Below are positions 3,481-57,882 of a DNA stretch of 64,000 nucleotides, piece by piece. The position numbers and the translations under genes were made by a program. A model generated the notes under the pieces. It saw only the letters and a program-made list of their open reading frames with translations. It ran no database searches and had not been told where the DNA came from. The DNA is taken from positions 139,748,001-139,812,000 of the forward strand of contig NC_042999.1 of NCBI RefSeq assembly GCF_006345805.1. The letters are read 5' to 3'. Within the stretch, counting starts at the first letter, position 1; each line of letters opens with the position of its first letter. This DNA is from Octopus sinensis. Its lineage: Eukaryota.

Positions 3481-3855
3481 TTGAGGAAAAGGAAACTCCA
3501 AAGAGGCCTTACCACCGTAGAGCTTTTTACTGTCCCGAGCTCTAAAATCAATTTTAGGGAAGATAGTTTGAGCAGGTGTCCATGGGAAAATAGTCGGAGC
3601 AGGATTTTGAGGGCTAGGTTCTCCATCTTTAAAGTGTCTAGAGCAAACGCGATGATGTTTTTTTGGACCATCCCAGTTGTCACCACGTCTTACTAGCTGC
3701 GTCCAAAGTTGACGCATGTACGGATCTTTCTTGGCAGTAGGAAAGGGGAAAAAGCGAACACCACGCATGAATGGATAGAGACTAACATTCTTGCGCGAAT
3801 CAGAGCTACACTGATGTACAATACACCACCACTTTGCTTTGCAAGTAGGCTCCAT
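3481..3855 (-). CDS. Variable first coding exon V1: THAP zinc finger (125 codons)
   Basis: MEPTCKAKWWCIVHQC..FFPFP..W..VCSRHF..PAPTIFP is a complete C2CH THAP motif. ATG at 3855; the ORF-track N-terminal extension comes from a non-ATG start. Donor CAA|GTAAGT after 3481 is phase 0. A competing phase-1 donor GTG|GTAAGG exists at 3512. Confidence 0.88.
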
Positions 3856-3963
3856 ATTAAAAAAATATAAACGACACGAACCAAGCTCGTTAGGCAACCC
3901 TCCAAAAAGGCAGGCAAACAAGAATTTATGATAACTGAACGGAAATGACTATGCCTTCACCTA

Positions 3964-4680
3964 TCACGTGACGTCCAAGGGATGCAACTGCAGAAGTCGT
4001 TGACAAAATATGAAAAAAGGTAAGCAGCTAAAATATGCAAAAAATCCGAAAGTAAAAAAATAAAAAGAGAAAGAAGAAAGTAAGATATTTCTTGATTAAG
4101 AAATGTAAATATGTACGGAATGACGAAACTAAATGCGCTCGCTAAATTTGTAATTAAGCCAGGTTACACCACACGACTGATACAAGTGATATTTTTATTG
4201 TATCTACCTCAAACCGCTTCTTCGCTCCTCGTCGTCGGATTGGTTTGAAGTTGAAGATAGTTGGTACTGCGTCTGGTTTAAGTCGTTGTTTTATTTTGAT
4301 GCCCCAGTGCTTGAGTAAATTAGGGTCTTTTACATAGCAGTTTCGTTCGAAGTGATCCGAACACAAACTAGAGTATTTCGAAGGTATAAATTCTGCCCGA
4401 TTAACCCTTGATAACCATTCCTTGTATATATGTGGCCTTGTGTTGCTGTCAGGAAAGCGGAAAAAACTTCTACCACTTCCTGTTTGATTACTGCAGCCGA
4501 AAGCAACACAGTGAACCATTTGCTACCATTTAAATTTCAATCCTAAGAGTATGGACTTTTTCCTCTTTTTACATGAACTGCTGTAAATCTTAACTAACAG
4601 AGATCACACAAAGATGGCGACAGTGTTGCACTAAAGTGATGTCATTACGAGTGGGGAGGTTACTCCGGAAATATCCGGAA
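3964..4680. promoter_or_regulatory. Promoter-type motifs upstream of V1 and V2
   Basis: TCACGTGA E-box at 3964-3971; YY1-type AAGATGGCG at 4611-4619; paired TCCGGAA (ETS-like) at 4664-4680. Confidence 0.4.
4208..4519 (-). CDS. Variable first coding exon V2: THAP zinc finger (104 codons)
   Basis: MVHCVAFGCSN..FFRFP..W..LCSDHF..LKPDAVPTIF is a canonical THAP including the AVPTIF box. Putative donor GAG|GTAGAT after 4208 is phase 0, of moderate strength. Confidence 0.88.
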
Positions 4681-4781
4681 ACGTACGAAATATAGTTATG
4701 GAAAAAAAAGGGCAATCGTTGAAATTATCATGCAAACATGCAACGATATTTGACAATTAAACGAGTATTAATAGAATTTAC

Positions 4782-5234
4782 CTTTAACGAGTCAAAGCCT
4801 GTACGCTTTAGAAAATTGTTTAACCATCCTTTACTAGCAACAAAAGGTTCGTAACTTCCACCCTGGTCTTGAACAAAACGCTCGTAAATAGCCAGTGCTT
4901 TGTCTCTAATACATATCGTGCTGAGGCTAAACTTCTTGTTTTGTAGTTGTTTCGTTATCCAAGTTCCAAGCACCTTTTCAGTTCTTTTTAACGCGGTATT
5001 CCCTATCCTGGTTACCGTTCCAGAAAACGGCGAGGAGTATAACACGGAATTCTTTATTTTGTCAGCATTTTTTTTGATTGAACGAATAGTGCTCTCTCCA
5101 ACACCGAACATACGGCCTAATGCAGATGAACCTTCTCCAGATTCGGCCCGTCCAAGAATCTCTAACTTGGTCTCTAATGTCAAATAGGTTCGTTTACGTT
5201 TTGTGAAAGAACTAGAAGCCGAACGTAAAGACAT
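4782..5234 (-). CDS. Variable first coding exon V3: Tigger/pogo-type CENP-B-like double HTH DNA-binding region, no DDE domain (151 codons)
   Basis: KRKRTYLTLETKLEIL..SALGRMFGVGESTIRSIKKN and FVASKGWLNNFLKR match TIGD/pogo N-termini. Donor AAG|GTAAAT after 4782 is phase 0. Confidence 0.85.
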
Positions 5235-6926: not shown

Positions 6927-8251
6927 CCAATTTGCGCAAAACGTCATTTAGAAAAAAGAAAAAGAAGCGTTCAGCGTGCAATATTCAATGAAATTAAGCA
7001 AAGACTAAATCAAATAGTTCATGCTTTTTGAGTCTACTTAGTCTGGAAGATTATTTCGGAGCTGAAGGATTACTGCGCCAAAAGAGAATAAAAATCAAAT
7101 TTCGATTTGTGGCGAGCACAAAGCAGAATGAACATCACGAAGACAAACTCATTTGAAAAACTAGTCAATCAAGATTGTACTAGAACAGAATTTTCAGGAA
7201 AGTGATTAGTCAGTGAACCTATATACGCACGCAAACAGATCAACCCATCGTAATGGATTTGCTTTAGCGCCACAACAGACGATTTAATAAATCGTCTAAA
7301 ATGTAACTTGTAATTTGAAAAGGCCAATATTTTAGCTTCGTAAATGAACTAACCTATAACCCCCCCCCCCAATAATTCTTGCTTAATTATGCAGAATACC
7401 CGGATAAACTACAACGAAAGCTTTAATATAGTATACTCGTTCGCTTTCAATAACAATGATGTGAGTTGTAAAACTTAATATTGTATTACACTTTCCTACA
7501 TATTTTCAACTTAACTGGTGGCAATGTACATATAAATATTAAGTGTATGAATGTATGTTTCATTTGTATTTATAATTAAAATCTTAAATTCAAACAGCAG
7601 CATTTAAGTTTTAAGAAAGGAAGGAGAATAGTAATGTATTTATTGAATAACATATTACATTTTCATTCAGGGTCAAGTAGCGGGGTATCGACTAAACCAC
7701 TCCCCTTCATATTTGCTGGCTTTATGTTAAATAAAATAACTACTGTGTTAGGGTATTCTGCAAAAGTAATCGACAATTATACAAGACATAAATCAGCTTT
7801 ATAGGACAAGTAATTAAATCTAAGAATTTAAACAGATAAGGAAACTTTATGAGGTATGGCACATCCCTTGCAAAAGATTTTAAGAGGAAACTGCGAAGTG
7901 GATCGAGCCAATTAAAGGAGCTTCTGTGTGAAATAGCAGCCACATCTATAGGCTAATGCAATCTAACCAACTTATTTCTCTAAATATTATGTGCAGCAAT
8001 TAGTAAATTTTACACTTTATTGTAAGTCGGTGGCTGTCACTATACTGCCTATTTAAAGTTAATGATGTGAGCCGCATATTTTCTAATTATAAAACTAGAT
8101 AAGCCCTTTACATCAAACACAAGGTACAGAGAAGTATATGACAAAAATAAAGTTGCGTAACTGATTAAAAAGAAAAATAATTTTCCAAATGAAATCCCTG
8201 ACTTAAAAATGGCATTACATGATCGTATAACTTGGAACCCAACAAACTTAC

Positions 8252-8587
8252 AATGACATTATCAGGATATCTCGTGGCACTGTTGTTTACAGCGTTGAAA
8301 CGCTTCAGTCTTTGTTCGGTAACAAAGTTAGATTCATCCTGTGGCCTTGGCGAGAATATTGTAGGGACATAATCAATACTGGCTGTATTACGAACGGGGT
8401 ATCGGCTGTGGAAATGCAAGCCACATATACGGTCGTTGTCGCTAGCAATCCAATTTGGCCTGTTTATAGCATTTACCCACAACTGACGCCGATGAAGGTT
8501 TCGCGGGAATCTATGCAACCGCAAGCCGAGCTCAGAATTTTCTTTGGTAGCCCTTACTTTACAACCTACCACAACACAAGATGGCAT
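8252..8587 (-). CDS. Variable first coding exon V4: THAP zinc finger (112 codons)
   Basis: MPSCVVVGC..LHRFP..W..ICGLHF..DYVPTIF. Donor ATT|GTAAGT after 8252 is phase 0. A strong acceptor (..catactctag|tcATG) lies 2 nt before the ATG. Confidence 0.88.
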
Positions 8588-9931
8588 GACTAGAGTATGA
8601 AATAATACGAATAATAATAAAGAAAAAAAGTGTTAGGATACAAAAATACTCTAGCGAAGAATAGAGATATGTCGGCCAAATAAACGATGCGCATGCGTTA
8701 ACTCCCACCCCTGCTTTTTATAATGTACTCTCTTGCTTATTTGGCACAAACTTCCAACTACTCTCGATACACAAAACACGTTTACCTATAGGATTCAAAC
8801 AAAAATTGAGCTACAAAAAAAAAAGCATTTGAATTCGTTTACATATATCGATAATTATTTTAGTTTTTAATTTCAATATTCACACCATTTGGAGATTGAA
8901 AAGAGATAAAGATCTGAGACCAGATTCATAAATCCAGGAATATGCATGGTGCTTCCAAACATCATAAACAAGCAACTAACAACGGAACCGGTAATCAGTT
9001 GCGCACGTGTACATGAAAAGTATGCATGACGTTCATGCCTGTCTCATTAGCATCAGTGATATATGTAAACAAATTTACACTGCGATGTGAAACTATCCCG
9101 CAAACAGTTAGACTAAAGAGTGAACCAGTGACGTAGTTGATTACGATTTATCTAATATATATTTCTTTACTACCCACAAGGGGCTAAACACAGAGGAGAC
9201 AAACGGATTAAGTCGATTACATCGACCTCAGTACGTAACTGGTACTTAATTTATCGACCCCGGAAGGATGAAAGGCAAAGTCGACCTCGGCGGAATTTGA
9301 GCGTAGTGTTTTTATATATATGTGTCTAAAATCGTGAAGTAGGAGAGAGAGTAGTAAAGTGAAGGGAGAGGAGAGCACATAGTAATTCAGTGGAGAAGTA
9401 GTAAGAGTAATAGCGCTGACCGAGAGAGAGTGAGAGAAAGGAAGTAGCAAAGAGTGCGTCGTGTATCTTGTTTTCTCCGTCACAACATATGAGAAAGGAA
9501 GGTGTGAGAAAAAAATCAGCGTTTCAACTGTGTGTATGTAAAAGGGAGGTATGTGAATGTTTGTGTGCAATGGAAATGGGATGGTGAACTTGAGTTTATG
9601 TGTGTGCATGTACAAGGAAAGTATGAGAATGTTTGTATTTGTGATTATAATGTATAAAGTACTACAATTAGCCGTCATTTTTGACGACACGGGGTCAGGC
9701 TAGTATAGTTATAACCAGTTTGTTGCTAGTTAAAAAAAAACAACTTCTTAAGGAAATGAAAAATTAAACTGAACATCTGTTTTCTTTGTAAAATATTTGG
9801 AAGCTTTTCGACCCATCTCCACATTTCTCGGATTCTTTTTTGACAAATGAGAGAATAACGACACTTCGTTCTATTTATACAGAATCATTTAAAAACAATT
9901 CTGGACAAAATTCAATACTTATAATACACAC

Positions 9932-10324
9932 CAATTTTTTTCTTGTTAGCAGCATGCGATCCAGAGTTCGTGAAATGCATCCATCACTTACAAGTGGTTT
10001 TTGTGGCAAATTCAATCTCATACCCTCATTTATCTTCCGCAAGGTGATAGATGGGTTGTTGTTTATTGCTTCGTACAAGTAGGCACGCATCTCATCATCA
10101 ACTTTCACATTGCATCTACCGCCTTTGAGTAATGCTTCTCGTTTGCCCGTTTTTATATAGTCTAAAATTATTCTGCTTGCAGTCTTTAGATTAATGCCCA
10201 TGGATTTAGCAAAGTCCTTGTAGTTCGATCCACGATCATAACAATCTATGAGTTGATTGCGTGCGGCGTTGGACACGGGCGGCTTCTTTGTTCCACGTCC
10301 GCTGGATGCGGCTTGCCGGGGCAT
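9932..10324 (-). CDS. Variable first coding exon V5: Tc1/IS630-type tandem HTH DNA-binding region, no DDE domain (131 codons)
   Basis: VSNAARNQLIDCYDRG..FAKSMGINLKTASRII..GGRCNVKV..NNPSITLRKI..VSDGCISRTL..LTRKKL matches the paired-like HTH N-terminus of IS630/Tc1 transposases. Putative donor TTG|GTGTGT after 9932 is phase 0 (weaker). Confidence 0.78.
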
Positions 10325-10350
10325 TGCAAAAATCACTCTTTATCAAAGCT

Positions 10351-11163: not shown

Positions 11164-11340
11164 CTTAGCAACATTGCCAGTACTAGCACGTTTCTGTCTT
11201 CTCCTTAGTGCAGACGATCTCATTTTTTCTAAACGTCTGCTCCTTTTTTCTGCAGTTTCTCTCTCTCTCCGGGCCCTCTCTCTCAATGCTTTTGCAGCAC
11301 GACGTTCCTCGTCGGTGGCATATTTCTTTGGCCTTCCCAT
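11164..11340 (-). CDS. Variable first coding exon V6: basic helical peptide with GRP (AT-hook-like) and ETxExRxxRL (STPR-like) motifs (59 codons)
   Basis: MGRPKKYATDEERRAAKALRERARRERETAEKRSRRLEKMR.. Donor AAG|GTAAAG after 11164 is phase 0. The family assignment is by motif resemblance only. Confidence 0.6.
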
Positions 11341-12651: not shown

Positions 12652-14665
12652 TACATACTTTATCACTTGCTATTTGGTATCAAAATTTGCATCTCATCTG
12701 CAACCTGGTCACTGACACAATTCCATTGTAATTCAGTGTTGCAACTGGACATCAAATGAAGACTGTTGAAACTAATAAATGATTAAATGAAGTTAACAGT
12801 TTATGCGATTCCGAATCAATGTCTTCCATGCTCTAAAATAAAATGTGTTCACAAACTTAATCTCAAGAATTTCTATGTGGAATTACATCTCTGGAAAGAC
12901 TTCCATTATACTTAAATGTATGTTGTATAATGATCTTCCTATTATATTATAATGGTGCCAAGCCCTAGGAATCTCAGACAAAAAACAAAACAATGGCATC
13001 TAGCTGTAGAAATTTTGCCAATTCAGATCAGAACCTGGTGCAGTGCCCTGGCTTACCAGTTTTCAGTCAAACTGTCCAACCCATGCTATCATGGAAAACG
13101 GACATTAAATGATGATGATGGAGATGATGATTCACTGTCAAACTGGATATTCATCTTCATGTAAAACTGAAAGTTCTGACAAGGAAAATAGAACACCAAA
13201 TACCTTTTCCAACCACATGAACATTGCCATTTAGAGCCACACAATTGCTAAGCAATGCAAAGGAGATCATTTATTTCAGTGTAAAGACCAAAACCTTTAG
13301 GTATTGAAAACAGAAAAATCAAGATATCTGAATTTGGAAAGAGGACAATGATGACAGAAAGATCAGAAATGGATATTAGGGAGGTGGAAAAAGAGTAACT
13401 GTAGGTATGTAAATGAATATCATATGCCAGAGTATAAGATGCACATGTTTATTCCTAGATGTAACAAAACACAAAAAAACTGCTGCACAATCTAATGCAA
13501 CTGTATAATACAGTTGGATAGGATACTGCATGTATGTGTATGATGAAACATTAAATTTATTTTTTCAACAAAAAAGTCTAATGTGAGAGTATTTTATACT
13601 GGTATATATGTATAGACAGACAAACAATGAGCCTCCACAGGTTGTGCACCAAATCACAAGAGGCATTGGTGAACCCAATGGCTTTTGTAAAAGACACTTG
13701 CCCAAGATGCTACATAGTCTGATCAAACTCAGAACCATGGAGCAGCAAAGTAAACTTCTTAACCACATGATTATCCTGCACATATTTGTAAAAAATTCTA
13801 AAAATTGATGCATCATAGCCATACATGAGAAGAGAGTATTTGAGTATTCGATAAGAAAATTCCTTAATAGCATCTTGAAGATGAAATTCCTTCATATATA
13901 CACACAGAACACATAACTACATGCATACCCTCCACTTTCAGCAAGTAATACAATGCCACAATGAGAGTCACCAAGATTAGTTACCTTAAATATAAAAAAG
14001 GGGCCACCTCAATTTACAAAAGTCAATGAAAAAAACTGTGGCAGAATGGAATCAAATGTGTTTACTAGATACACATCACCAGGTCAAGTCATGATCAATA
14101 AAGAATGTCTGCTACAGAAATTAAGGTGAACAATGGTGCAGCTGGACACCAGTTTTGTATGTTAAATGGTTATCACACTTCAGAAATCACCAATATAATA
14201 AGTATAATAGTATTCCACATGATGTTTGATATTTTTCGCACAGCAAGCTATCAATATGTTGGCCCATTGGAACAGCCCAGCAAAAGTAATAGAATGACCC
14301 TCAACTAAATTTGCAACACTGAATTCTTTTATCCTGGAGCAACTATTAAAAGAGCAATCAGAAAACTCATTCTAGCACCGAGAGAGCTTCTATAAATTAT
14401 GTAGCTCAAACTTCATGCTAGGAAGAGTCAGGGTATGTGTGTGTGAGAGTAAATGTGGTTTAGTGGTTAGTGTGTTGCAACCATGGTTATATAACCCTGG
14501 ACTAGGCAGTGTGCTGTGTTAATGAGCAAAACACCTAATTTTATGTTGCTCCAGTTCGCTCAGCTGGCAAAAGTGAGCAATCCTGCAGTGGATAGGTGTC
14601 CTGCTCAGGGGGTGATTAGAATCAAGGAAATTAGCCAGATCTTTAGATCTTATTGTATGTATATA

Positions 14666-16387: not shown

Positions 16388-16388
16388 G

Positions 16389-16428: not shown

Positions 16429-16432
<4 letters not shown>

Positions 16433-18683: not shown

Positions 18684-18779
18684 ATCTATGTATCCACCTG
18701 AGGAATGGAGAACATTCATTGGTCTGACTGGTAGAGGATCAGGGTGGTCTCGTGTAGGTCCATTGCCACCAACAAAATG
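18684..18779 (-). CDS. Internal 96-bp exon completing the split THAP domains (HFVGGNGPTRDHPDPLPVRPMNVLHSSGGYID)
   Basis: Acceptor cttattttctttcactccag|CAT and donor GAT|GTAAGT give a phase 0-0 exon of 32 codons. It starts with the His-Phe missing from the four exons ending CSK/CTK. It is too short to appear in the ORF track. Confidence 0.85.

Positions 18780-20348: not shown

Positions 20349-20351
<3 letters not shown>
19379..20351. repeat. Near-perfect 449-bp inverted duplication (arms 19379-19827 and 19903-20351, 75-bp spacer)
   Basis: The arms are reverse complements with one mismatch noticed. The mirrored ORFs 19412-19639(+) and 20091-20318(-) differ only as HAGR vs HASR. Confidence 0.93.
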
Positions 20352-20395
<44 letters not shown>

Positions 20396-22770: not shown

Positions 22771-22947
22771 TAAGAAGGAATAACAAGGTTTTTTATAATG
22801 ACGAGCGAGTGTGGCTTTAGGGATTGCGAACTTCTTAGCAGCTTTTCTAATACTGAGACTTCCAGACAGTACTGCTGATACGGCAGAAACCATCTGGCTA
22901 GATGACCACTTCCCATTGTCTGTTTTCCGGACATACGACTGAACCAT
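22771..22947 (-). CDS. Variable first coding exon V7: pipsqueak-type HTH (59 codons)
   Basis: MVQSYVRKTDNGKWSSSQMVSAVSAVLSGSLSIRKAAKKFAIPKATLARH matches the HTH_psq of pogo-like transposases. Donor TTA|GTAAGT after 22771 is phase 0. Upstream acceptor at 23000-23001. Confidence 0.82.
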
Positions 22948-23967: not shown

Positions 23968-24357
23968 TCGCTTGTTCTTGTCATCCACTTTTAATTGCTG
24001 TACACATGTGAAATGAGTTGGATCCAACTTTAGACTTTTCAACACCCGCTGGCATGTCCTCCTGCTTATGTGAGACTCCTGCGCCAATTTACGTGTTGAC
24101 TTGTTTGGACTTCGAGTAATCCTTCGGCGAACCTCCTGAATAACTTCCGGCGTTCGAACTGTAGGGTCTCTTGGTTTGGGGGCGTTGTGCACTGACCCCG
24201 TAGCGCGCCACTTCTTAACCAACATTTGTATCGTTCTTTTTGCCGGTAAGCCTTTACCCGGAAACTTAACTTCAAAAATTTCACGCGTTTGCTTAACAGA
24301 ACCCGTTCTCACATACGTTTTCACAATCTCCATCCTTTCTGCTATTGAGTACGTCAT
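23968..24357 (-). CDS. Variable first coding exon V8: DUF4817-like plus second HTH of Tc1/mariner-type transposase, no catalytic domain (about 130 codons)
   Basis: MTYSIAERMEIVKTY..F..KFP..P.KRTI..LVKKWRATGSV..R..VRTPEVI..SPNKSTRKLAQE..ISRRTCQRVLK. Similarity ends where the catalytic region would start. Putative donor CGA|GTAAAA after 23968 is phase 0 but weak, so the 3' boundary is less certain. Confidence 0.78.
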
Positions 24358-24474
24358 TTTGCAGAAAAAAACCAGAGATGTCAACTCAACGCAACCATAC
24401 AATCAACTAATGTGGTGGGGATAACGTAGCAAACAGTCGACTAGTACGCCATCTTTGATCAGCAGTTACACGCG

Positions 24475-32736: not shown

Positions 32737-32934
32737 CTTTGAACAGACATATTTATTCTGATCGATCTTGAATACATTTAGTTGAGAATACGGCCGACCG
32801 CATGCTTCAATCCATCGCAAACACTTTTCTAGCTTTGTACGCGGTTTAGGAAAAGGAATGAAAAATCCACCGTTTATTCGTTCTGGGTACCTTTCGTCGG
32901 CGTTACACAAACCCCACACACATCGGCGCACCAT
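32737..32934 (-). CDS. Variable first coding exon V9: split THAP, N-terminal part (66 codons)
   Basis: MVRRCVWGLC..FFIPFPKP..CLRWIEACGRP..YVCSK|. Kozak GCCATGG, donor AAG|GTAAGG in phase 0, strong upstream acceptor ctcccctccctgcag. Confidence 0.88.
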
Positions 32935-34960: not shown

Positions 34961-35167
34961 CTTCGAGCAGACGAAGTGATGCGATTTAATTTTATTAATA
35001 TTCAGCTGATAGTAAGGCCTGCAACATGCATCAAGCCAACGTATACAACGCTCCAGAGAACTCTTAGGCTTAGGAAAAGATACAAAAAACACGTTCAGCA
35101 TGTGAGGTTTATGTTTGTACCGACTGTCACTACGACAAGTACCCCAAGCGCAACGCTTAGTTACCAT
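34961..35167 (-). CDS. Variable first coding exon V10: split THAP, N-terminal part (69 codons)
   Basis: MVTKRCAWGTC..FFVSFPKP..CIRWLDACCRP..FVCSK|. Donor AAG|GTAAGC in phase 0; acceptor catctttccag 11 nt before the ATG. Confidence 0.88.
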
Positions 35168-36478: not shown

Positions 36479-36685
36479 CTTTGAACAGACGTAAAGGTTT
36501 TTGTTTCCGTCAACAATGTTAACGTTCAGTTGCTCGGGAATTCGACCGCAACGTTCAATCCAACGAAGACATTTGTCTCGTTGTCTCCGCGGTTTCGGAA
36601 ACGGTATGAATGTAACACCACCGAACAGACGTTCAGGATAACGATCGTCTGTATTACACAAACCCCATGCACAACGCTTCACCAT
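36479..36685 (-). CDS. Variable first coding exon V11: split THAP, N-terminal part (69 codons)
   Basis: MVKRCAWGLC..FIPFPKP..CLRWIERCGR..YVCSK|. Donor AAG|GTAAAT in phase 0. Confidence 0.88.
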
Positions 36686-38733: not shown

Positions 38734-39891
38734 CTGGTCCTTCTCAGAATCATTCCGTATCAATGTTACCTGCAGGTCCAGAGAACCATCACCAGAATTA
38801 TCAATAACCTGAGCATTCGTTGAGCTAGCTAAAGGCGTTGCACCAGAGTTTGAAGAATGATTTGATTCACCCTCTAAGATTTTATGCTCGAGACGAGAAT
38901 CTTTAGCATACGGCAAAGTAAAATTGTAACCCCCAGATAAAACGGTCTTATTGGAACCAGTTATTCTAATGGAATGGTTGCTGTACTTTTGTGAGAGTGA
39001 ACAGGCAAGACTAAGTTCAGGCATAAACCTTTGTAAAGTATTTCGACCTACAGCAATGTTTCGATACCAGACTGAGCCTTCGGGCGAATAAGGAGATATC
39101 GGTCTTTGCCATAATCGGTGGCAAAGCGGATGGAGTTTGCTCTTATATTTTTCAAATGATTTCACAGGACAGTTTGGATCATTGGGCCTTTCAACGATAT
39201 ATGTTAATTCTTCAATGTCAATTGTAGACGGACCTGTTGCTTGGATGTTAGAACCAGAGCACACTGATACGGTCTTGGTCTTCAAACTGCGTGGGGACTG
39301 TTCTTCAGCTTTACACATATACTTATACCCGGTCTGCGAATCAACGCGGACTTGGAAAGTCTTTTTAGTCATTTCTACCATACTCTGGGGACCTTTTCGG
39401 AAGAAATATAACCGGATCTCAAATTGAACTTTATTCAGTAAGCCTAAAGGTGTATTGATGTCAAAATAAACAGATGAATATAACTTCTCTAAATCTTCAT
39501 CCAAAATAATAGGATGATGGGTCACTTCACCTTTACCACTAGTTTTCAGCTCATTAACAGTTTCTTTAAAATGAGCGTTAGCTTCTTCAAATATTTCATC
39601 TTTAATGAGATCAAATGTTTTGAGATACGGTGGAAGCCGAAAGTATCGGTTAAGTGCATATCGGAAGCCTTCCAAACTGGTCACCTTATACTGATCACCA
39701 TCACGCTTTCGTACATCTCGGTAAAATAATATCAGCAGCTCACTCAGTTCTTTGGCGTCCAAAGATTCGAAATCTGTGGATAAACTCTTATCTTTTAAAT
39801 AATCCCGTAAAGCACGAGCCGCTTTTTCATTGGCACGCCTTGTATTTTTAGGTACGGCCTTATGTTGCCCATCAACAGCAAAAGTATCCAT
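38734..39891 (-). CDS. Variable first coding exon V12: Crypton-derived tyrosine-recombinase-like DUF3504 domain (KCTD1/QRICH1/ZMYM-type), about 386 codons
   Basis: FYRDVRKRDGDQYKVTSLEGFRYALNRY, NTPLGLLNKVQFEIRLYF, CPVKSFEKYKSKL, VGRNTL..FM and YSNHSIR. Donors CAG|GTAGGT (38734) and CAG|GTAACA (38770) are both phase 0. Acceptor actaacttgacag|t lies 1 nt before the ATG. Confidence 0.85.
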
Positions 39892-44661: not shown

Positions 44662-44745
44662 AATAAGATAATACTGTGATTATAACCAACAAAATTAATA
44701 ATAATAATGATCATAATAATGAACAATAGTAAAGGTAAGCCTTAC

Positions 44746-45096
44746 AGTAATCCGTTTGTCATCCTCATTAGTCTGTTTTTGTGGTAAAGATCCTTTAGTT
44801 TGAAAAAGAGTTGGTATTGCACCAGGTTTCAATTTCATTCGTGGTAATTTGCAGCGGTAGCCGACCTCCAAATACCGACTTTCGAAATGGCGCGTACAGA
44901 TTCGAATCTTGCACCGTATTTTTGCAATGTTTGAACATGTCATATCAAGAAAATTCTCCATCTGGCCAGAGTCAATACCCAGATTCTGGGCCCAGATCCG
45001 ACATTTTTCTCGGTCCTTCGGAAAACAATGCAACCGAATATGACGAGGTAATCGACCGTCGTGGCTGGTGCAACGAAATGCTATACAATGTGGCAT
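44746..45096 (-). CDS. Variable first coding exon V13: THAP zinc finger (117 codons), paralog of V16
   Basis: MPHCIAFRC..HCFPKD..W..ICTRHF..LKPGAIPTLF. Donor ACT|GTAAGG in phase 0. Confidence 0.88.
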
Positions 45097-48657: not shown

Positions 48658-48858
48658 CTTGGTACAAATATATGTTGCTCTGCTGATGCGATTAACGTTG
48701 AATTGATAGGAAGGTCTACCACAGCACAGAATCCATCGTAGACATTTCTCTAGGTTTTGTTTGGGCTTCGGAAAAGGTATGAACTGAACACCGCCCGCCA
48801 ACCTCTCGGGAAATCTATTGTCAGTGTTACATGTACCATAACAACACCGTTTAACCAT
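48658..48858 (-). CDS. Variable first coding exon V14: split THAP, N-terminal part (67 codons)
   Basis: MVKRCCYGTC..FIPFPKP..CLRWILCCGRP..YICTK|. Donor AAG|GTATAA in phase 0; without splicing a stop follows one codon later. Confidence 0.86.
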
Positions 48859-51833
48859 CGTATTGCATAGATAACAAAGTGGAAAAGTAAATCAATACTT
48901 TTTGCAGTCAGACAACGTTTCTTTTGTTTTCTTATAATTTGAGGATGTTTACGGTAAAAGACTTCATAAAGAAATACGAATAGGGGAGGGGGGCTGACAG
49001 ACGTACAATTCAATGTTTGTCTGAGTTAGCAGCACAGACACTATCATATGACGCAAACACTCACTGCTGATTGGCTTATGCTGCCCTACAGCTGAAATGT
49101 AGCAAGGGAAATAAACCATAACTGCAACAGATCGTAAGCTGTCAAATACACTACGAGTACACTCAGGTATAAAATTGCAACGGGCAACATTGCGTTTGGT
49201 TGAAATAAAATTCCACAGGAACCGATATAAAGTATCTGTAACATATTGTTGAAATTCATCATCCTTCAAAACTAGATTATTGAAGACAATGCAAATATAG
49301 GCACAAGCTGAATTAGGTTACCAAAATATTTAGAAGTTGGAGCCACCAGATACATTTACCTCTTTATATGGGTTGTTTAATGGTAACAGTCATTTCCGAC
49401 TCTGGCCCAATACATTAAATCATCCCAAGAATAATAAAGATTTGAGTGAGGTGACTTAGAGGAAACTAATATGTGGTTAGTACTAATTTTATCGACCCGA
49501 AAGTATATGATGCCAAAATAATAAGACATCTTCAGCCTAACCATCAGAAAAGGATTGTATCCTGGATAGAACTCCCACCATCATTGGTGACAACTGCCTA
49601 ATAAAAAATGCTACTCTATCCACCGAATCAGAAAAGACGGTACCGTTTGACTTTACTTTCACTACACAACAATTACAAGTCAGAGCTGAAGTATGGACGC
49701 GTGAGAATTTAGAAAAAACAAGAATAGTCATACATTTGATGTTGCTAAACAGGAGGTCCAGTTTATGGACTTAAAATTGCTTAATGTTAGCATAAATATG
49801 ACCAGTTAGTAACAATAAGAATATTTCTTAAGATGCACTACACTATTACAGCACATCAAATATTTTGTCTTAGTAGACAAAACCTTTCACTAAGGGAGTT
49901 ACTTTCTACTATTTTTATACTATTTTATATATTTAAACACTGAAAGTGTGTGTACGGGGGGGGGGAGTTAAAAAATAAGCAAGGAATATAATTGTTAGGT
50001 GGTCACTCAATGTAAGTATACTCTGCCATCATATATAAGGAAAATATACCCAGATCAGTAGCTTTTAACCAGGGATGCAATAACCACTCACAGACATTGT
50101 GAGCTCACAAAGAACAGCACATGTGAGAAGTGGGCATAATAATTTTTCTCATAAATAAAAGATAAACCAGGTAGTCATATTTGAAACATATAAAAAAAAC
50201 TTTTAAAATTTTAAGGTATACATATCAGCAAGTAGAAATATGTGATGATGTGCCAAGGTCCAGTATAATTTCATTATATAGGTCCTTGTCTTCTTTACTA
50301 ACTTCCATAAAAATTTAACATAGGGGGTAATACCTAAGCAAACATCTAAAAAGAAGCATATGCTGAACAGGCTACAGTAATAGGAATAATAAATTACCTG
50401 CAAGATTAGTATATGTTTTCATTAAAAACAATCTTTTTAAAACTTTTATTATTATTATTTTTTAAAGGCAAAATGGAGTTAGAACCTATGAAAAACATTT
50501 CCTGAAAGGAAGCACTGAGGTACAAAGGTCTAATAACTACTGATTTAAATAATGTAGTTCAAGATGGCCATTAAAAAGATGAGATGATCAGAGCTGAAGT
50601 ACATTTGATCATCCAACATGCACCAATTCAATTTTTTCTTTTTAAATTTGAGACACAGAACTGTTATTTTAAATGTGACATAGTGGATTTGAAACCGTAA
50701 AGAAACTCACTGGTGACAATAAACTTTTTATGCCATAGTATATATTTTTAATGTTTAAGAAAAGGTAATATCTAAGAAATTAATCTATCCAAAGAAAGAA
50801 TATAAATTGGCTGATTCCTTGGCACATGCAAAATATGTAGAATTACAAAAGTTACTAAGAAACAAAATCTGGAGTGGGAATGGATACTAAACTATAATTA
50901 CACCAATGAAAAAAATAGACAAGCATTTAGAATACAAAGTACTGTGTAATGTTCAAAGCATTCAACCTTAATCCTAAAATCAGTTTAAAAATACTGAAGA
51001 CATGGCATGTCACAGCTCCATCAAAGAGTTGATAATCCAAAGCCAGGCAACACACATACAAACTTTCAATATTTGGGACAAAGCTGCTAATTTTCAATGA
51101 ATCTACCAAATTTTGTAACTCAGAATAATACATGGAAGAAAAAACTAGAATCCAAGATTCTCTAGGGGTAAAATGGAGTCAGAAAAATAAGAGAAGCAGG
51201 GAGAGTGAAAATTGCAGTCATTGACTTGTTATAGTTTAAATAGAATGTCAATGGAACCAGTTTCACTAGTCTGGAAGGCCTATGAAAGCCCTGAGAACTA
51301 TCCTTCCTTCTAGACAAAACTGAAGAAAATATCAATGTTTCAAAGTAGGCTCGATTGAATGTGTCTTAAATATAATATAAGGTTAAATTTCACTATAATC
51401 AGTGAATAGTATTCCTCCAATCAAACATATCACTTGTTACATTGTTTAGATATATATATTATCAATATTTGTCATTTGGCAATTTTCAAACTGAGTCATG
51501 TAGATAAATCAATTGATGCAGAAGATTTACTGATGCACATTTCAGCAACTCTGGATGGATAAATTCAACACCAGTGAAGTTTCATGTACTGAGCTGAGCA
51601 ATACAAAACTACATGCTGCAGAATACTACACTAATAATCCAGGTATTGTATTTAAAACATGTACCAGTGTAATGAGAGAGATTTTGAAAAGTATCTTTTG
51701 TACAAACATGATATAAAAAATTTTTTTTTAATCAATGAATCATATACATTGCTTAAAAACCTGTTCAAAACTCCCAGTATGCCTTAATCTGAACAAAGAT
51801 CTTTATTGATGTGAAAGAGAAAATTCGACTAAC

Positions 51834-52928
51834 CTCAAATATCCCTGAAAGTGAAGAATCAGCTGAAATCAATCTTTTGAAATGCTGCTGCTTGGCATCA
51901 ATTGGTGGCTTCTCAGAAGAGACACTGTCCAACTTTGGCCCAGGTAACTGGTGAGTGATTACTTTCTGTATGCTCTTCAAATCTAATTTATCTGAGACAA
52001 TGAGACTGCTGAGTGTGGCACGAAGACATTGGTTGGTGTATGAATGCGAGAGGTGTGCTTTGGATGATATTTCTCTCATAAAGTTAGCTATACTCTTGCC
52101 ACCATGTGGTTGCAATGTGTACCAGGTAGGCGAATTTGTTACATCTCCAAAGCGGGGTTGACAAAAGAACTTGTCACTTTGTGGGTGCAATCTTGATAAA
52201 TAGTTTGCAAAAATTTTAACAGGACACAATGCTTCGTTTGGAACTTCATGTATCATCCTACAACTCGTGTTACTTAATTCGGTCGGAATATTTTCGCCTG
52301 TGTTGACAATACCATCAGTGAGGATTATAGATTGCAAACCAGACTTCTGATCCTTGTTAACGCGAAAATGATGTTTCGTTAATTGTGAGAGGCATTTATA
52401 GCCGTTACGACCAAAAAACAAGACGATGTCCATAAAGACACGTTTCTGGAGCTTGTTTGGATTATTCAGATCACTGTTACACCAGCTGTAGGCTTTTTGT
52501 AAATCAGCAAGAGTTATTGCAGATTTGGCATTCCCGATAGCTGAGAATTTTTGTTGTAGACTATAGGAATGTTTCTGCCACACTCTGTTAGCCTCTAGGA
52601 AATAAGGGTCATTTAATATATCGATGCCCCTCTTAAGTATGAAGCGATAAAGGCCATAACGAATACCTCGTAGACCGGCGTGTTTATACCAAGTACCGTC
52701 ATCTTTACGTAAATCAGGGAAAAAACTACAAAGATAATTTTTCAAGCGATGCTTGGCTTCCATATCACCACGAGCAATTTGCGACAACAACTGATGGAGT
52801 CGTAATTTTTCTCCTTTAGAAAAAATATATTCTCCAAATTTCTCGCAGGCACTGACTTCGGCGCGCTTTGTGGAATGGGCCTCAATATTGGCGGCGGAAC
52901 TCTCATTCTGTGATTCTTGAGTTGCCAT
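51834..52928 (-). CDS. Variable first coding exon V15: Crypton-derived DUF3504 domain (about 365 codons), paralog of V12
   Basis: FFPDLRKDDGTWYKHAGLRGIRYGLYRF, NNPNKLQKRVFMDIVLFFGRNG, CPVKIFANYLSRL, HGGKSIANFM and YTNQCLRAT. Donor GAG|GTTAGT in phase 0; likely ATG at 52928. Confidence 0.83.
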
Positions 52929-54859
52929 TATAGTATATAAATCAAGTAAAATACCGAACAATTGAAAAAAACTGTAACACTAAAGTGATATAACTTTAAA
53001 AAATTCAATACCTTCATATGTATATTATTCCTTACGATGCATTTTAATACAAAACTACATAGGTGATTGATTCGGGAAACGAAGCTCAATATTTTAATTT
53101 AAAATGCATAACTTTATACATAAAGCAAATGAGACCATCTCTTTCAAGGAAAAGAAACGTAGCATTTAAATTATATATCAGCTGATATCTGCATAATTTT
53201 AAAAGAAGTTGTGAAAGCAACAACAGGGTTAGATGATTAAATGCAATCACTGACAGTATTAAAATTGTTACGAGCATCGAACTGAGCAAAAGTAGTGACT
53301 GGCGCTAAGATATCTAAAGTTGTTATTCATGTGATAACAAGACTACTGTATAATTCTCGATCGAAATAGTAGCAGTAGGAGTACGTTGTAAGTTATTATG
53401 ACATTCAATTAAATCACGTAAGATGACAATAGATATTTATCTTATGTACACTCAATAAAGAGATATAAATGAACATAAACATAAAACAGAAAGGATTATA
53501 AACACGTGTAAGTAGACTAGAGATTGATCAGTTGTGTAAGTTTTTAACTGGAGTGATAAGGCAGACAGTGATGTGTGATATACTGTAGTCCAATAACACG
53601 AGTTATTATTACACAGTGGGTGACGAACGAAGTTGGCAGAGAGCAAAACAATACGCCACGAGAATGAGTGCATCGGCTGAAACATTCCACAGCAGGCTTA
53701 GAAAATAGAAGAGGCCAACAAGATGTACTCCAAAACAGAGAAACAGAACCACAGGACGAAACAAGAGAAATGGCATCAAGAATAGCTACGTTGGTTAATA
53801 ATACGAGGTCGCTGACATCAGATTGCAACTAAAAGCCGTTCGCGATAACAGGCCTGAACATAAGTAGTACCCCTAATGTACATAACGTATATTACACAAA
53901 CTGCTGACGTAGAAAGCAGCAAGTTCTATGTTATCTACCAACTGAAATAGTCCTTCCTACAAAGTAAACATCTACATAGTCATTATTTACCACAAAACCG
54001 AAGCGAGTATTTACAACAGCTATATAAACATTTGATAGTGGCTGCTGCTATCATTAAATGGGAAAAGATTATTTATTGCCACAGGCTTGAAGCTGTTCTT
54101 TTTTTTTCATTAAGAAAATGATTAGATTAAAAAAAATAAATATCAGCATCCCTATAACAATTTACGTTCACATAAGTGTGTGTATATATATATATTCGTG
54201 TACATCTCTACAAATGTACATATAAAAATAGCTAACAGCATAGCCGTCACTCGCAAGCGAGCATGATCTGATAGTTTGTACCAGGCGTTTTTTTTTTTTT
54301 TATTGTTCTTGGTACCAACCCTAATGTGAGCTGACGGAGACACTCAAGGGCCTTCTCACCTTTGAGCCCAACAGGAAAACGAAACGACTGGAGGAAGAGA
54401 GGGCTGCCACTCATTTTTAGCCGAATAAACTGGAACAAAGTGAACTGATATGCTTTGCTTAAGGACATGATGTTTCCTAGTCCAGGAATCGAAGCCATGA
54501 CCTTAGGATCATGAGCCAAACACTCTTCACACAAATTCATGCACGAGTGCAAGTGCATAATGTGTCTATACGTATATATAAGTGGGTTGGTGTCCGAGGG
54601 CGCAGTAAGCCTACTGGGAATGAGGAATTCCTGGTACATGTTAAGGCATCCCTCTAGAAGGCTAACTTGTACATAAAACCCGCTGCTCTGAGCCATATAT
54701 CTCACACTTTGTCTCTAGGCTTCTTGGTATTGCTAGTGAGAGTCGTTGTGGTGCTGTAAGCAGCAGTGCTCAACTTAAAACCCTTGCACAGGCATTACCG
54801 ACAGTGATAGTTATGATCCTCTACCCAGTGGACAACCATTAATTATGTACGTATGCACG

Positions 54860-54892
<33 letters not shown>

Positions 54893-56105
54893 GGATTGGG
54901 GGAGGGCACTACTAGGTTAAGAATTTCTCTCCAAAAGGTTTTTGCAGCAAAGGTCTAACACACACAAGTGTGTACAAATATATTTAACATAGTGTTACAC
55001 TCAAAATTTGAAAGACCTCAGTTGCAAAAACTTCTTGGAGAGAAATTCTCCTTAGCCCAGTAGTGCCCCCCCCCCATCCATAGAATCTATAAGAATTTCT
55101 CTCTAGAGACAGTCTCCGCAGTGGAAATCTTTCTACTTTTGAGTGTACATAAACATTTTAAATACAATTATACACAATTATATTTCAATCATTGCTGTTT
55201 AGTTTGCTTCTGATTAATACACACACATCTTTTCTCCCATATATATAATAAATATGATATGTGTGTGTGTTATTTAAGACACTTTGATTTGGCTCCATGT
55301 GAATTAAAGTTTTGCAGGCCTGTTAACACAGACCCATCTTATTCAGGATTAGTTAACTGAAGTCTAAACAAGCCAGGTTTCTGTAAAGAGGCATGGAACC
55401 AAATCAAACAGTTTTAAATAATAATATATTTAACTCCTACTAAATGTGTTGAATGCCTTTTTCTTTCATTTGTCCACTCATGTATATATGAAAATCCTCA
55501 TAGAGGTAAATGTGATCATGTAATTACATACACATAGAATAGAAAATTGGACACTGGATGTAAATGTAAGATGTTTGCCACTTGAAGTTCTAAATTTTAG
55601 GCTTTGTATAGCTAGTCCCTCTTCCCAGTTATATTAAAGAAATGCATGCTATATGATACCTATTTCTATATGCACAAAATCCAAGTACATTTCTTAGTAT
55701 ATCAAGCACATTGGACATGTAGCTAACAAGTTTGCTTTGCAATTATGTGGTTTTAGGTTTGTTTCAACTTCATGGCAGGCAAATATGTAACAGTCTAAGA
55801 TTGAGTGAAACCGTGTGAATGAAATTGGATCATATGGAAACCATGTGGAGGCCAGCAAATAGACTGTATTTCTGTTTTGAGGTTCCAGTTCTATCTCACA
55901 GTGCATGTTGATTTTTCAAGTCTAAATTTATGGTACAAGTTAATGAGTAGGTAGTTCCATTAATTGGAAAACTGAGACACATTTGTTGAAATCTAGAACA
56001 TATATGAGAGAAGGTGAGTTAAAATATAAAATAACTAAGACAAACATTAAGTTTCTCAAGATTTGATATGTTTAGCAAAACTCATCTATTGATGATGCTT
56101 CCTAT

Positions 56106-56400
56106 CATCATTTAACGTCCATTTTCCATGCTGGCATGGGTTAGACGCTTTGACTGGTACAGGTAAACTATGGAGCTGCACCAGGCCCAAGTTGTCTGTT
56201 TTGGCTTGGTTTCTCCGACTGGGTGTCCTTCCTGACACCAACTACTTTACAGAGTGTACTAGGTGTCTTTTACATATCACCGGCACTGGCTACAATTCAC
56301 TTAGCTTGACGTGTTTTCTCAAGTACAGCAAATCGCCAGAAGTCTCGGTCACTTGCCATAAGCCTGCATGAGGCTCAACAACTGAAGATCATATTTCATC
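56106..56400 (+). mobile_element. Third interspersed repeat family (TCATCATTTAACGTCCATTTTCCATGCTGGCATGGG..)
   Basis: Related fragments occur near 12990-13130(-) and 26500-26600(+). Confidence 0.5.
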
Positions 56401-57522
56401 ATTTTGTCTCTCCTATTAAAACAAGTACATGCGTTTGAAAGTTAAAAGTGAAGCTCAAACATTCTTTGAAAATATTTCTTACATATATACTTACACAAAA
56501 ATAATTTCAAATGTGAGTTATTAATGGTGTTCTTTATTAGCATATCCCATAAATTGATGGCTATTATAATCATTATTTAGATATCCATATAATTATAAGT
56601 TTTACACCTTTACTCGCCTTAATTATGGAAGGAAATTGAAGAGATAATTAAAATATTTAATAAACAATGAAACAAATTTTGTGTTATGTAAAAATAGGAA
56701 CATGAACACTTTAATAATCGGTTGACTTCCTGCTATATGATAGTACATAACATAGCTCTTATGTACTGAGTTAATTCAACCAATGCGTTTTTCGATAAAA
56801 TTTTTACAAAAGGTGGGTTTTCGAGGGTGTAGATTACAATTAAGTTAGAATATAGAAAAAAAAATTTGGAGTTTCGAATCTTGGTTATTATCAAATTCCT
56901 TAACTTTAAGATCCCCCTCCCGATGGTTTAAACCATCAATGTTATGTAAACAAAACACTTTAGTGCTTCCAATGGTTGTTCTAAATTCTCCTGGACTTAA
57001 TTGTAGAGAAACAATGGCACGCGTAACGCTTAATGTAACGCTCTGGCAGAAGGCTATCAAAGCTCTAGATGTGGAAAGAAGAAATTGAGATTTAAAGTAA
57101 CTGCTGCTAGTATGTTAGCTACTTTCCTTTCTCAATCAATTTCTTTCCATTCGTTTATTCAGTCACCCACTCCTCCACTTTATCACAAATTAACAACACA
57201 ATATCTGCTATTATTCTTGGCGGTTCCTTTAATGACACTAATTTTATCGACCCCCAAAAGAGATGAAAGGTTAAAAGTTGATCACTGCGATAATATATTT
57301 CAAGTGCTATTGTTTGCATCAAAACTGACATTGTTAACTTGAAAAGTAGTTATCTTAATTATACTATTGTTACTAGCAACAGCAATAAGAGTTTCTAACC
57401 CATCCTATAAAGAGGATGCAAGAGTTAATGGTGTTTGCCTTTTAAATGATTCAAAGAGAATGTGTGTAAAAGAAAACAGCAATATTTAAAAGGTGTTCAC
57501 AAAAAATAAAAGATTTCCTTAC

Positions 57523-57882
57523 GTCAGTTGGGCTGTTTAGTTTCAGTTTGGTATACCATTTTGGTGTGGGGACATTGCTCGTCTGGAATATTGTTGGTAT
57601 GGCATTCGGCTTCAGTAAGATACGTGGGTTCTGCATAAACTGGAAGTTCTGTTCGAAACAATGAGGTTCAAAATGCAGAGTGCAGATTCGAAATCGGCGC
57701 CGTATGCTCTGGTCATCCGAACAGGCCATGTCGAGGAAGTTCTCTATCTGGCTGAAACTAATGTTCATGTTCTGGGCCCAGATTCGACACATTCCCCGAT
57801 CTTTGGGGAAGCAGTGTAGCCTGATATGACGAGGGAGTCGGCCATCATGACTTGAACAACCGAACGCCTTACATTGGGGCAT
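57523..57882 (-). CDS. Variable first coding exon V16: THAP zinc finger (120 codons), paralog of V13
   Basis: MPQCKAFGC..HCFPKD..W..ICTLHF..LKPNAIPTIF. Donor GAC|GTAAGG in phase 0. Confidence 0.88.

Follow-up and report, generated by a model that had tools for sequence, protein, structure and literature searches.

Variable first exons and their common body

What is encoded by a stretch of octopus DNA in which one ATG-initiated exon after another, always on the same strand, carries a DNA-binding-type domain, mostly of transposon type, and stops at a splice donor? The stretch analysed here (the window: 64,000 nucleotides, with positions counted from its first letter) is C3:139,748,001-139,812,000 of the 2.7-Gb Octopus sinensis assembly, and falls in LOC115209932, listed in RefSeq as an 'uncharacterized protein'. 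The window is the middle third of this single minus-strand gene of ~185 kb, which runs from 139,740,681 to at least 139,926,130 on the 174-Mb chromosome C3 (the O. vulgaris model of the gene covers 177.5 kb), and the array of exons continues for about 115 kb rightward past the window. We consider it highly probable that the gene has about 30 alternative first exons, by which differing and mostly transposon-type domains, predicted to bind DNA (the heads), are joined to one common BTB-domain body. Each first exon would have its own promoter, giving one DNA-binding head per transcript, and the products would act as sequence-specific regulators of chromatin or transcription that pair via the common BTB domain. 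An initial annotation of the window, made from the sequence alone, had proposed a modular locus with selectable N-terminal DNA-binding heads and a common C-terminal part; with the body located and public gene models joining heads to it, that proposal proves essentially right.

The strand bias of the window is strong. Among ATG-initiated open reading frames (ORFs; standard code, ATG starts), all 15 of at least 90 amino acids (aa) are on the minus strand; at 100 aa or more the counts are 14 minus against 0 plus (one-sided binomial p ~6e-5), and at 120 aa or more 12 against 0, in line with the earlier remark that no comparable plus-strand ORF was to be seen. AT skew is above zero in nearly all 2-kb bins, consistent with the window lying inside a single minus-strand transcription unit. 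Pfam recognizes THAP in the ORFs 3457-3855, 4154-4519, 8165-8587, 44695-45096 and 57451-57882, CENP-B_N with HTH_Tnp_Tc5 in 4728-5234, HTH_29 in 9875-10324, HTH_psq in 22693-23025, DUF4817 with HTH_32 in 23866-24357, and DUF3504/QRICH1 in 38707-39891 and 51765-52928, so that the DNA-binding-type modules of the initial annotation are real domains. In all, the window holds 16 ATG-initiated exons and one internal linker exon, I2. The heads comprise five THAP, four split-THAP and two Crypton-derived DUF3504 domains, a basic AT-hook-like piece, and one each of CENP-B/Tc5, psq, mariner-type helix-turn-helix (HTH) and paired-like HTH. Every first exon ends at a phase-0 GT donor (16 of 16, with a GTA start in 13 of the first 15). 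The first exons are listed here in window coordinates, a slash within letters marking the splice point; C1, the first body exon, and I2 are described further on.

V1, 3481..3855, minus strand: THAP, 125 aa, directly to C1; Pfam THAP E 1.2e-12; donor CAA/GTAAGT, phase 0
V2, 4208..4519, minus strand: THAP, 104 aa, to C1; 100% to the N-terminus of O. bimaculoides isoform X28
V3, 4782..5234, minus strand: CENP-B_N + Tc5 (pogo-type) HTH, 151 aa, to C1; 99.3% to X14
V4, 8252..8587, minus strand: THAP, 112 aa, to C1; Pfam THAP E 3.3e-14
V5, 9932..10324, minus strand: paired-like HTH (HTH_29), 131 aa, to C1; 131/131 to O. bimaculoides X18
V6, 11164..11340, minus strand: candidate, basic AT-hook-like (MGRPKK...), 59 aa, to C1; donor AAG/GTAAAG, phase 0
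V7, 22771..22947, minus strand: HTH_psq, 59 aa, to I2; Pfam E 8.5e-11
V8, 23968..24357, minus strand: candidate, mariner-type HTH (DUF4817 + HTH_32 in Pfam), 130 aa; inside a deleted mariner-like element
V9, 32737..32934, minus strand: split-THAP, 66 aa, ending ...CSK/, to I2; 100% to O. bimaculoides X32
V10, 34961..35167, minus strand: split-THAP, 69 aa, to I2; 100% to O. bimaculoides X30
V11, 36479..36685, minus strand: split-THAP, 69 aa, to I2; 98.6% to O. bimaculoides X29
V12, 38734..39891, minus strand: Crypton-derived DUF3504/QRICH1, 386 aa, to I2
V13, 44746..45096, minus strand: THAP, 117 aa, to I2; 94% to O. bimaculoides X16
Fourth split-THAP exon, 48658..48858, minus strand: 67 aa, ending ...CTK/, donor AAG/GTATAA; found by ORF scan, aligns with V9-V11
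V14, 51834..52928, minus strand: DUF3504, 365 aa, to I2
V15, 57523..57882, minus strand: THAP, 120 aa, to I2; Pfam THAP E 9.7e-14; 92% to O. bimaculoides X13, the model of which begins at an internal Met

The initial annotation had also counted 16 exons with their own ATG and had given 13 donors. The number of ATG-first exons stands, although one of those then included (the exon ending at 18684) has no ATG and is internal, and the donor list was incomplete in lacking the four split-THAP exons. The 13 donors themselves are all phase-0 GT sites right behind the domain. Nine of them (4208, 4782, 9932, 18684, 22771, 38734, 44746, 51834 and 57523) are exact exon ends in RefSeq or ENA protein models, and two more (3481 and 8252) are base-identical in another octopod; donors 11164 and 23968 are putative. 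The tight packing of V3, V2 and V1 noticed earlier is likewise confirmed, with gaps of 262 and 352 bp.

The array extends to both sides of the window, with four more ATG-first exons leftward and about 11 rightward, all on the minus strand. The 10 kb directly left of the window contain, on that strand, a THAP, a DUF3504, a C2H2/GAGA-like finger and a zf-C17orf113-like finger exon; to the right, heads on the same strand are found at window-equivalent +93.7, +114/118.9, +123.3, +132.2, +134.8, +162.8, +172.5, +173.7 and +177.9 kb. Head types over the whole locus thus are THAP, split THAP, pogo-type CENP-B/Tc5, psq/Brinker, mariner-type HTH, paired-like HTH, FLYWCH, Crypton-derived DUF3504, odd zinc fingers and the basic AT-hook-like piece.

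The body was predicted to lie left of position 1 and to be entered through a phase-0 acceptor. It is found 5.3-7.3 kb left of the window, leftward of the four head exons just mentioned, as three exons coding a BTB protein (4730-4495, 4407-4104 and 3745-2681 in the coordinates of C3:139,738,001-139,748,000):

C1, C3:139742495-139742730, minus strand: begins AGPSNQV; acceptor ...tttacag/GCA, phase 0; donor phase 2
C2, C3:139742104-139742407, minus strand: second body exon
Exon C3 (on chromosome C3), C3:139740681-139741745, minus strand: ends in a TGA stop

The three exons, C in the combinations below, code for a product of 534 aa, in which Pfam finds BTB/POZ (PF00651, E 8.7e-11) from residue 160 to 263. 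Common to all isoforms, the body consists of a linker that is basic and rich in Q, the BTB, which is ZBTB/KLHL-like, and a Ser/Thr-rich tail. The closest solved BTB structures are those of IVNS1ABP (E 1.4e-10), then ZBTB17/BCL6, SLX4 and ZBTB18. The order of domains is not that of the ZBTB type (N-terminal BTB, C-terminal C2H2): the body has no C2H2 array and its BTB is C-terminal. The TTK-type LRWN N-terminal motif is not visible in the BTB sequence of the body; the TTK-type BTB motif was not found in Mollusca by Bonchuk et al. (PMC11426971). Within the fast-evolving Ser/Thr-rich tail, the psi-K-x-E motifs DVKQEI and VKTEPVGPEDD of exon C3 are kept from octopus to cuttlefish, as is the C-terminal YPVGLFTAGGD..LPL motif; read by eye, the psi-K-x-E motifs would be SUMO-type sites.

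Public models join 11 of the 16 window exons to this body. Letter for letter, V12+I2+C is XP_036357306.1 (O. sinensis isoform X1, 952 aa), V14+I2+C is XP_029634399.1 (O. sinensis X2) and V7+I2+C is CAI9720178.1 (O. vulgaris). In O. bimaculoides, isoforms X13, X14, X16 and X18 of LOC106877732 carry the orthologues of V15, V3, V13 and V5, and X28, X29, X30 and X32 carry those of V2, V11, V10 and V9; isoform numbers for this gene reach X36 (at least 36 isoforms). When the isoforms were cut at AGPSNQV and their N-termini mapped onto the window, the matches ended exactly at 4208, 4782, 9932, 44746, 51834 and 57523. We count 29 public isoform proteins with an identical 534-aa body. A homologue search with that body returned O. 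sinensis X2 and X3 and O. bimaculoides X5 to X18, in which the same body is preceded by THAP, CENP-B/Tc5, FLYWCH or DUF3504 heads, as well as an Argonauta hians orthologue and paralogues. Moreover, spliced transcripts of relatives with a THAP, DUF3504 or Brinker/Tc5 head and a BTB domain are present on Logan contigs that scarcely exceed the length of the coding sequence (CDS). Exact look-ups left eight of ten predicted O. sinensis products unmatched (V1+C, V4+C, V6+C, V8+I2+C, and V9, V10, V13 and V15 each with I2+C); O. sinensis RefSeq appears to hold only few isoforms. The 3' end of V1 is used in an old fused UniProt model, A0A0L8GDU7.

The convergence on one acceptor that had been proposed is realized in part. 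V1 to V6 go directly to C1, whereas the exons right of 18779 need a linker first:

I2, 18684..18779, minus strand: internal linker exon, 96 nt, 32 aa (HFVGGNGPTRDHPDPLPVRPMNVLHSSGGYID), phase 0 at both ends, then to C1

I2 has a polypyrimidine-CAG acceptor, a GAT/GTAAGT donor and no ATG, and is part of all ~20 middle and distal isoforms; the peptide HFVGGNGPTRDHPDPLPVRPMNVLHSS(G/A)GYID, which it codes, stands between head and body in every isoform with a head right of 18779. A tblastn extension upstream had raised the idea that the I2 region is a full THAP first exon; this was rejected, as an intron with a normal acceptor lies there. The window thus has two routes, V1-V6 to C1 and ten exons at 22.7-57.9 kb to I2 and then C1, and exons beyond the window pass two further linker exons first; distal-tier linker pieces are coded at window-equivalent +89,064, (G)DTQNVQISKQTHRFST, and at about +145,865, LKTQNQINEEYDV. 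Use of the linkers I1a, I1b and I2 tracks the order of the exons along the chromosome, and a single rule fits all isoforms: from each first exon, splicing goes to whichever acceptor-bearing exon comes next downstream. As most first exons have no acceptor, ordinary cis-splicing to the next acceptor-bearing exon would produce this order.

Two observations concern the tiers and I2. Donors of the middle tier are of phase 1 and those of the window tier of phase 0, and splicing to the acceptor of the wrong tier would therefore give an out-of-frame product. About 600 nt upstream of the I2 acceptor lies a 456-nt inverted repeat (19372-19827 and 19903-20358; 99% complementary, 75-nt spacer), the arms of which carry a repeat recurring elsewhere in the region; it could form a long pre-mRNA hairpin, be a substrate for editing or splicing control, or be an assembly artefact.

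The dependence on I2 reaches into the DNA-binding fold itself. V9, V10, V11 and exon 48658-48858 end in C-S-K or C-T-K at the donor and I2 starts with H-F, such that the splice junction cuts the Cys-x2-His half of the C2CH finger in all four exons and the zinc-binding His comes from I2. The THAP signature Cys-x2-4-Cys-x35-50-Cys-x2-His is present in the THAP heads, and in the split-THAP exons it is complete only after joining to I2. V9 alone scores 19.5 bits against the THAP profile (cut-off 23.9) and 30.1 bits with I2; V10, V11 and exon 48658-48858 reach 31.7, 32.3 and 31.2 bits with I2. Just left of the window, a THAP exon of the same subfamily is contiguous (...CSLHFIGKNGPTPEHPDPIP...), from which it is seen that I2 corresponds by homology to the C-terminal part of a finger of this kind. 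An AlphaFold2 model of V9+I2, made from the single sequence, was uninformative (mean predicted local distance difference test score, pLDDT, 39.6). This division of zinc ligands between a variable and a shared exon is an unusual sharing of a DNA-binding fold. Another THAP head is divided elsewhere: the distal one of O. bimaculoides X11, at +113,974-114,252 and +118,854-118,925, has a 4.6-kb intron after residue 24.

Selection and the probable choice of first exons

The ratio of nonsynonymous to synonymous substitution rates (dN/dS) was obtained by the Nei-Gojobori method against Logan contigs of another octopod (runs SRR11869385-94), which are colinear with the locus at ~80-90% identity. Values in the window are 0.10 for V1, 0.00 for V2 (seven synonymous changes), 0.08 for V3, 0.45 for V4, 0.147 for V12 and 0.157 for V14, and all six exons are under purifying selection. 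Left of the window, the THAP, DUF3504, C2H2-like and zf-C17orf113-like exons give 0.03, 0.09, 0.62 and 0.04, and constant exon C1 gives 0.02. Pooled over eight proximal variable exons (four of them in the window), dN/dS is 0.147, with a dS of 0.153, close to the Jukes-Cantor distance outside exons (0.157). The p-distance of V12 is 0.07, against 0.18-0.23 in its flanks, with zero indels in the exon; that of V14 (dS 0.187) is 0.058, against 0.14-0.15. All ATGs and donors of the compared exons are kept, being identical for V1, which has zero indels; the only deletions are in frame (3, 9 and 3 nt), one of 3 nt being the sole indel of V4, which retains its ATG and GTAAGT donor. The non-exonic alignment of ~9.4 kb has 902 gap columns. 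A dN/dS of about 1 had been named in the initial annotation as speaking against it; most compared exons are at 0.00-0.16.

Evidence on how the heads are chosen comes from the sequence around the exon starts. No acceptor-like polypyrimidine-AG is present within 90 nt upstream in 13 of 15 exons, by a heuristic scan and not a splice-site model; the same scan finds the acceptor of I2 perfect and that of V9 strong, the clear exception among first exons, with a weaker site at V11 and a weak one at V4. Between -450 and +300 of 28 head ATGs, CpG observed/expected lies at 0.87-1.09, against a locus background of 0.49 +/- 0.08, and none of 5000 random sets was as high. Over the 188-kb locus as a whole the ratio is 0.49, and within the window 0.62, the remainder of the locus being strongly depleted of CpG. 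A value of about 1.0 at the exon starts fits unmethylated promoters, without proving them. Upstream of V9 (32935-32950) lies a strong polypyrimidine tract with AGs 10 and 6 nt before the ATG, the one at -6 being in frame; splicing of an upstream head to this site would in principle yield a protein with two heads, like O. bimaculoides X4 and X7.

Several points weigh against a gene with ~30 alternative first exons as set out above. The evidence for the joins is from RefSeq/Gnomon and ENA protein models, computational products that nevertheless draw on transcript data, and among the isoforms listed no model includes V1, V4, V6, V8 or exon 48658-48858; the products predicted for V1, V4, V8 and exon 48658-48858 would have 659, 646, 696 and 633 aa. 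V8 lies in a multi-copy deleted mariner, about 15% of the copies of which stay open by chance. No shared promoter motif came out of a k-mer comparison of 28 first exons (300 bp upstream of each), which gave only T-runs and nothing above the null. O. bimaculoides X4, X7, X35 and X36 use an upstream leader exon or two joined heads; first-exon choice is therefore not the sole mode, and some alternative splicing is superimposed on it. Finally, DNA binding by DUF3504 itself is uncertain (PMC3212892).

The isoforms with a leader exon or two heads bear on whether the same gene, with the same body, might select its heads mainly by mutually exclusive cassette splicing from one or a few far-upstream promoters. 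The short leader exon MKNVINEDDFLLNKNK of O. bimaculoides either precedes a THAP exon or joins I1a directly, giving the head-less X35 and X36; X4 and X7 combine a THAP with a psq exon; and acceptor-like sites stand 6-10 nt before the V9 ATG and, weaker, at V4 and V11, all of which would suit such cassettes. Cassette selection is nevertheless unlikely as the main mode, since most window exons have no acceptor-like site in the 90 nt scanned, the RefSeq CDS begins at each exon's own ATG, the CpG ratio is promoter-like around every exon, and what lies upstream of the V8 ATG is the transposon's own 5' end. Trans-splicing of separate head and body transcripts, as at Drosophila mod(mdg4) and lola, would also bring many alternative DNA-binding exons to one BTB body. 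The case for it is by analogy, to which the inverted repeat in the intron upstream of I2 may be added, intron pairing elements being known to aid unusual splicing elsewhere. At mod(mdg4), some variable exons are on the opposite strand, which forced the conclusion of trans-splicing. At the octopus locus, however, no opposite-strand variable exon was seen, and with all exons colinear on one strand ordinary cis-splicing suffices; we would give trans-splicing a very small chance.

A more radical doubt is whether there is a modular gene at all: the introns of a BTB gene could merely contain ORFs with no relation to one another, either relics of transposons or small genes in their own right, and the multi-isoform models would be artefacts of annotation. 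Errors do occur here, the older O. bimaculoides model A0A0L8GDU7 (1402 aa) wrongly chaining six exons; V8 is demonstrably within a deleted mariner copy; and five exons are without a model. Relics or independent genes would hardly be expected, though, to place all 16 heads on one strand with phase-0 donors fitting a phase-0 acceptor, to have a dN/dS of 0.00-0.16 in most exons with ATGs and donors kept, or to yield four THAP exons that are incomplete zinc fingers unless spliced to I2. Moreover, the THAP exons tested are absent from the rest of the genome, catalytic transposase domains are missing, and the same head+BTB proteins are seen as spliced paralogue transcripts. This explanation is accordingly most improbable, and one gene with alternative first exons remains the reading that we favour.

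Proposed transposon ancestry of the heads

The initial annotation called the domains transposon-derived. The evidence is direct for V8; for the pogo-, Crypton- and THAP-type exons the derivation is a conclusion drawn at the level of the family, in the THAP case from where the fold in general originates, and the THAP exons tested are without transposon copies. V8 lies inside an internally deleted mariner-like element (~23909-24582). The element has terminal inverted repeats, and its 5' repeat occurs once more at 24584-24702; sister copies with the same deletion occur elsewhere, for example at C3:143,580,422-143,581,190. The 130-aa head has dozens of genomic relatives with 50-76% aa identity, most of them with stops, and a longer copy of the family runs into mariner-type DDE motifs. 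The V8 donor lies just behind the DNA-binding domain, where its GTA is a Val codon native to the element, at the point of the deletion. No orthologue or gene model of V8 was found, the homologue search with its ORF returning only relatives of at most 73% identity, and V8 may accordingly be a transposon fragment that is intact by chance.

A transposase DNA-binding head without its catalytic domain is what is found in V8, in V3 (CENP-B_N+Tc5) and in V12 and V14 (DUF3504, a Crypton-derived domain; PMC3212892), the exons stopping right after the domain. Copies outside the locus are sparse for the heads other than V8. V5-type sequences have a few decayed genomic relatives (45-53% identity); the nearest relatives of V3 have at most 34% identity; V12 is related chiefly to other DUF3504 exons, which precede BTB bodies on C23, C2 and C16; and the THAP exons V1, V2, V4, V13 and V9 have no relatives outside the locus at E 1e-5 or better. 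It follows that most heads are old exons that were multiplied locally, and are not recent captures. V13 and V15 are paralogues (57% identity), and exon 48658-48858 has 61% identity to V9.

The first THAP exon of O. bimaculoides X4 and X7 is of another kind. It has at least 20 scattered copies in O. sinensis with 71-82% aa identity (for example at C3:55,163,355), many with stops, and no orthologue in the 314 kb around the O. sinensis locus, to ~36 kb past the most distal mapped exon. It may be a lineage-specific capture.

From V8 and this THAP exon one might go further and regard the locus and the 11 paralogues in tandem with it as a place where DNA-binding domains of transposons are trapped and archived. 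An element would insert in sense upstream of a BTB body; exonisation would follow by way of the element's own 5' end and a cryptic donor behind the DNA-binding domain; and the product, through its BTB, would bring a repressor or adaptor module to copies of that same element. Ongoing capture would fit V8 (a deleted mariner with a native GTA donor and dozens of relatives) and the X4/X7 exon, and against an archive it must be said that most heads are old, with no cognate elements left. We therefore offer this only as a tentative idea, more probably wrong than right by a wide measure. If true, it would mean a heritable, protein-level anti-transposon repertoire, built from the transposons' own DNA-binding domains and functionally analogous to KRAB zinc-finger clusters and to clusters of PIWI-interacting RNAs.

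Paralogues and comparable systems

The body is one of a family. Its BTB terminal exon occurs in 12 tandem copies on the window strand (C3:139,538,454-139,741,745), in units 10-30 kb apart, 11 of them besides that of the gene described here, whose array of heads is by far the largest of any unit. Five more such exons form a second cluster 2 Mb off on the opposite strand (C3:141,877,939-141,982,454), with single copies on other chromosomes. Neighbouring units bear heads of their own, including a FLYWCH exon, and annotated paralogues have ZSWIM3_N/FAR1 and FLYWCH heads. For the candidate V6, which has no Pfam match and no gene model, a copy with 64% identity and the same ATG and donor position is present in the variable region of a neighbouring paralogous BTB gene, and a basic N-terminus resembling it is on the spliced BTB transcript P0039. 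In the cuttlefish Acanthosepion pharaonis, a 50-kb locus contains two tandem constant units with an annotated psq-like head, the phase-0 acceptor of C1 and an unannotated CENP-B/Tc5 head, similar to V3, that ends K/GTAAAG in phase 0. The architecture would thus be older than the octopus-cuttlefish split.

The clustered protocadherin (alpha and gamma) and UGT1A loci have alternative first exons in one orientation, each with its own ATG and donor and no acceptor, which are cis-spliced to shared 3' exons. The octopus locus resembles them in its array of first exons, its shared C-terminal exons and its several units in tandem. In contrast to them, its heads are not mutual paralogues, since at least eight unrelated DNA-binding folds are represented; its products are predicted to be nuclear BTB proteins, not cadherins or transferases; and its shared linker exons add tiers nested within one another. 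At the octopus locus, no counterpart of the conserved sequence element (CSE) of protocadherin promoters was detected.

With lola and mod(mdg4) of Drosophila the locus shares a constant part with a BTB domain and 20-30 alternative exons for DNA-binding domains, FLYWCH included (PMC11426971; PMC13490949). The polarity, however, is reversed, as flies have the BTB at the N-terminus and the variable exons at the 3' end, whereas the octopus heads are N-terminal and the BTB is C-terminal. Moreover, the fly BTB is of the arthropod-specific TTK type (PMC11426971), whereas that of the octopus is closest to IVNS1ABP and ZBTB17/BCL6, and the fly loci trans-splice, whereas nothing at the octopus locus requires it. 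The resemblance is a case of convergence and not of homology, and the octopus locus is a mirror-image counterpart of the fly loci.

The nearest one-off analogue is isoform b of vertebrate KCTD1, in which a Crypton-derived DUF3504, coded by one upstream exon, forms an alternative and highly conserved N-terminus of a BTB protein; Kojima and Jurka (2011) ascribed the exon to a transposon insertion upstream of the original gene (PMC3212892). KCTD1 has one captured exon and a T1/KCTD-type BTB, whereas in the octopus gene DUF3504 exons make up three of the ~30 heads and the BTB is ZBTB/KLHL-like, and more DUF3504+BTB loci are found on the same three chromosomes as the relatives of V12. In KRABINER, reportedly described by Cosby et al. 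in 2021, a transposase DNA-binding domain without the catalytic domain is spliced to a host regulatory domain. As in such host-transposase fusions, the V8 donor is within transposase coding sequence just after the DNA-binding domain; those of vertebrates, however, are single scattered captures, whereas in the octopus many superfamilies are gathered before one effector.

No paper describing this locus was found in the open-access and bioRxiv texts searched. Mukherjee and Moroz counted octopus THAP and CENP-B proteins with BTB/POZ among transposon-derived factors and took the BTB to be a transposon component (PMC10027918); their text uses neither 'isoform' nor 'alternative' and makes no mention of the locus. 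Although the gene models are public, the locus is apparently undescribed. It unites protocadherin-style first exons, domain swapping in the style of lola and mod(mdg4), and host-transposase fusion, otherwise known only separately. We know of no larger collection of unrelated transposon-type DNA-binding domains serving one effector. With V8-like capture intermediates standing beside old, selected exons, the locus opens the question of how transcription factors are born from transposons. Cephalopods are known for their expansions of protocadherins and C2H2 proteins, and the locus also raises the question of whether they diversify nuclear regulators by first-exon choice.

Other sequences of the window and its surroundings can be dealt with briefly. 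An Rfam scan of the window found no RNA family, and exact protein look-ups of ten window ORFs gave no match. The minus-strand ORFs 9217-9678, 13565-13873, 19734-20434 and 54247-54696 were rejected as exons, having repeat or low-complexity translations with neither domain nor model. Right of the window, on the minus strand, an intact Tc1/Sleeping-Beauty-type HTH ORF of 154 aa (+147,579-148,043; HTH_Tnp_Tc3_2, E 1e-21) and a repeat-rich ORF of 250 aa with no Pfam match (+80,801-81,553) are present in no isoform seen; both could be further heads or mere transposon remains.

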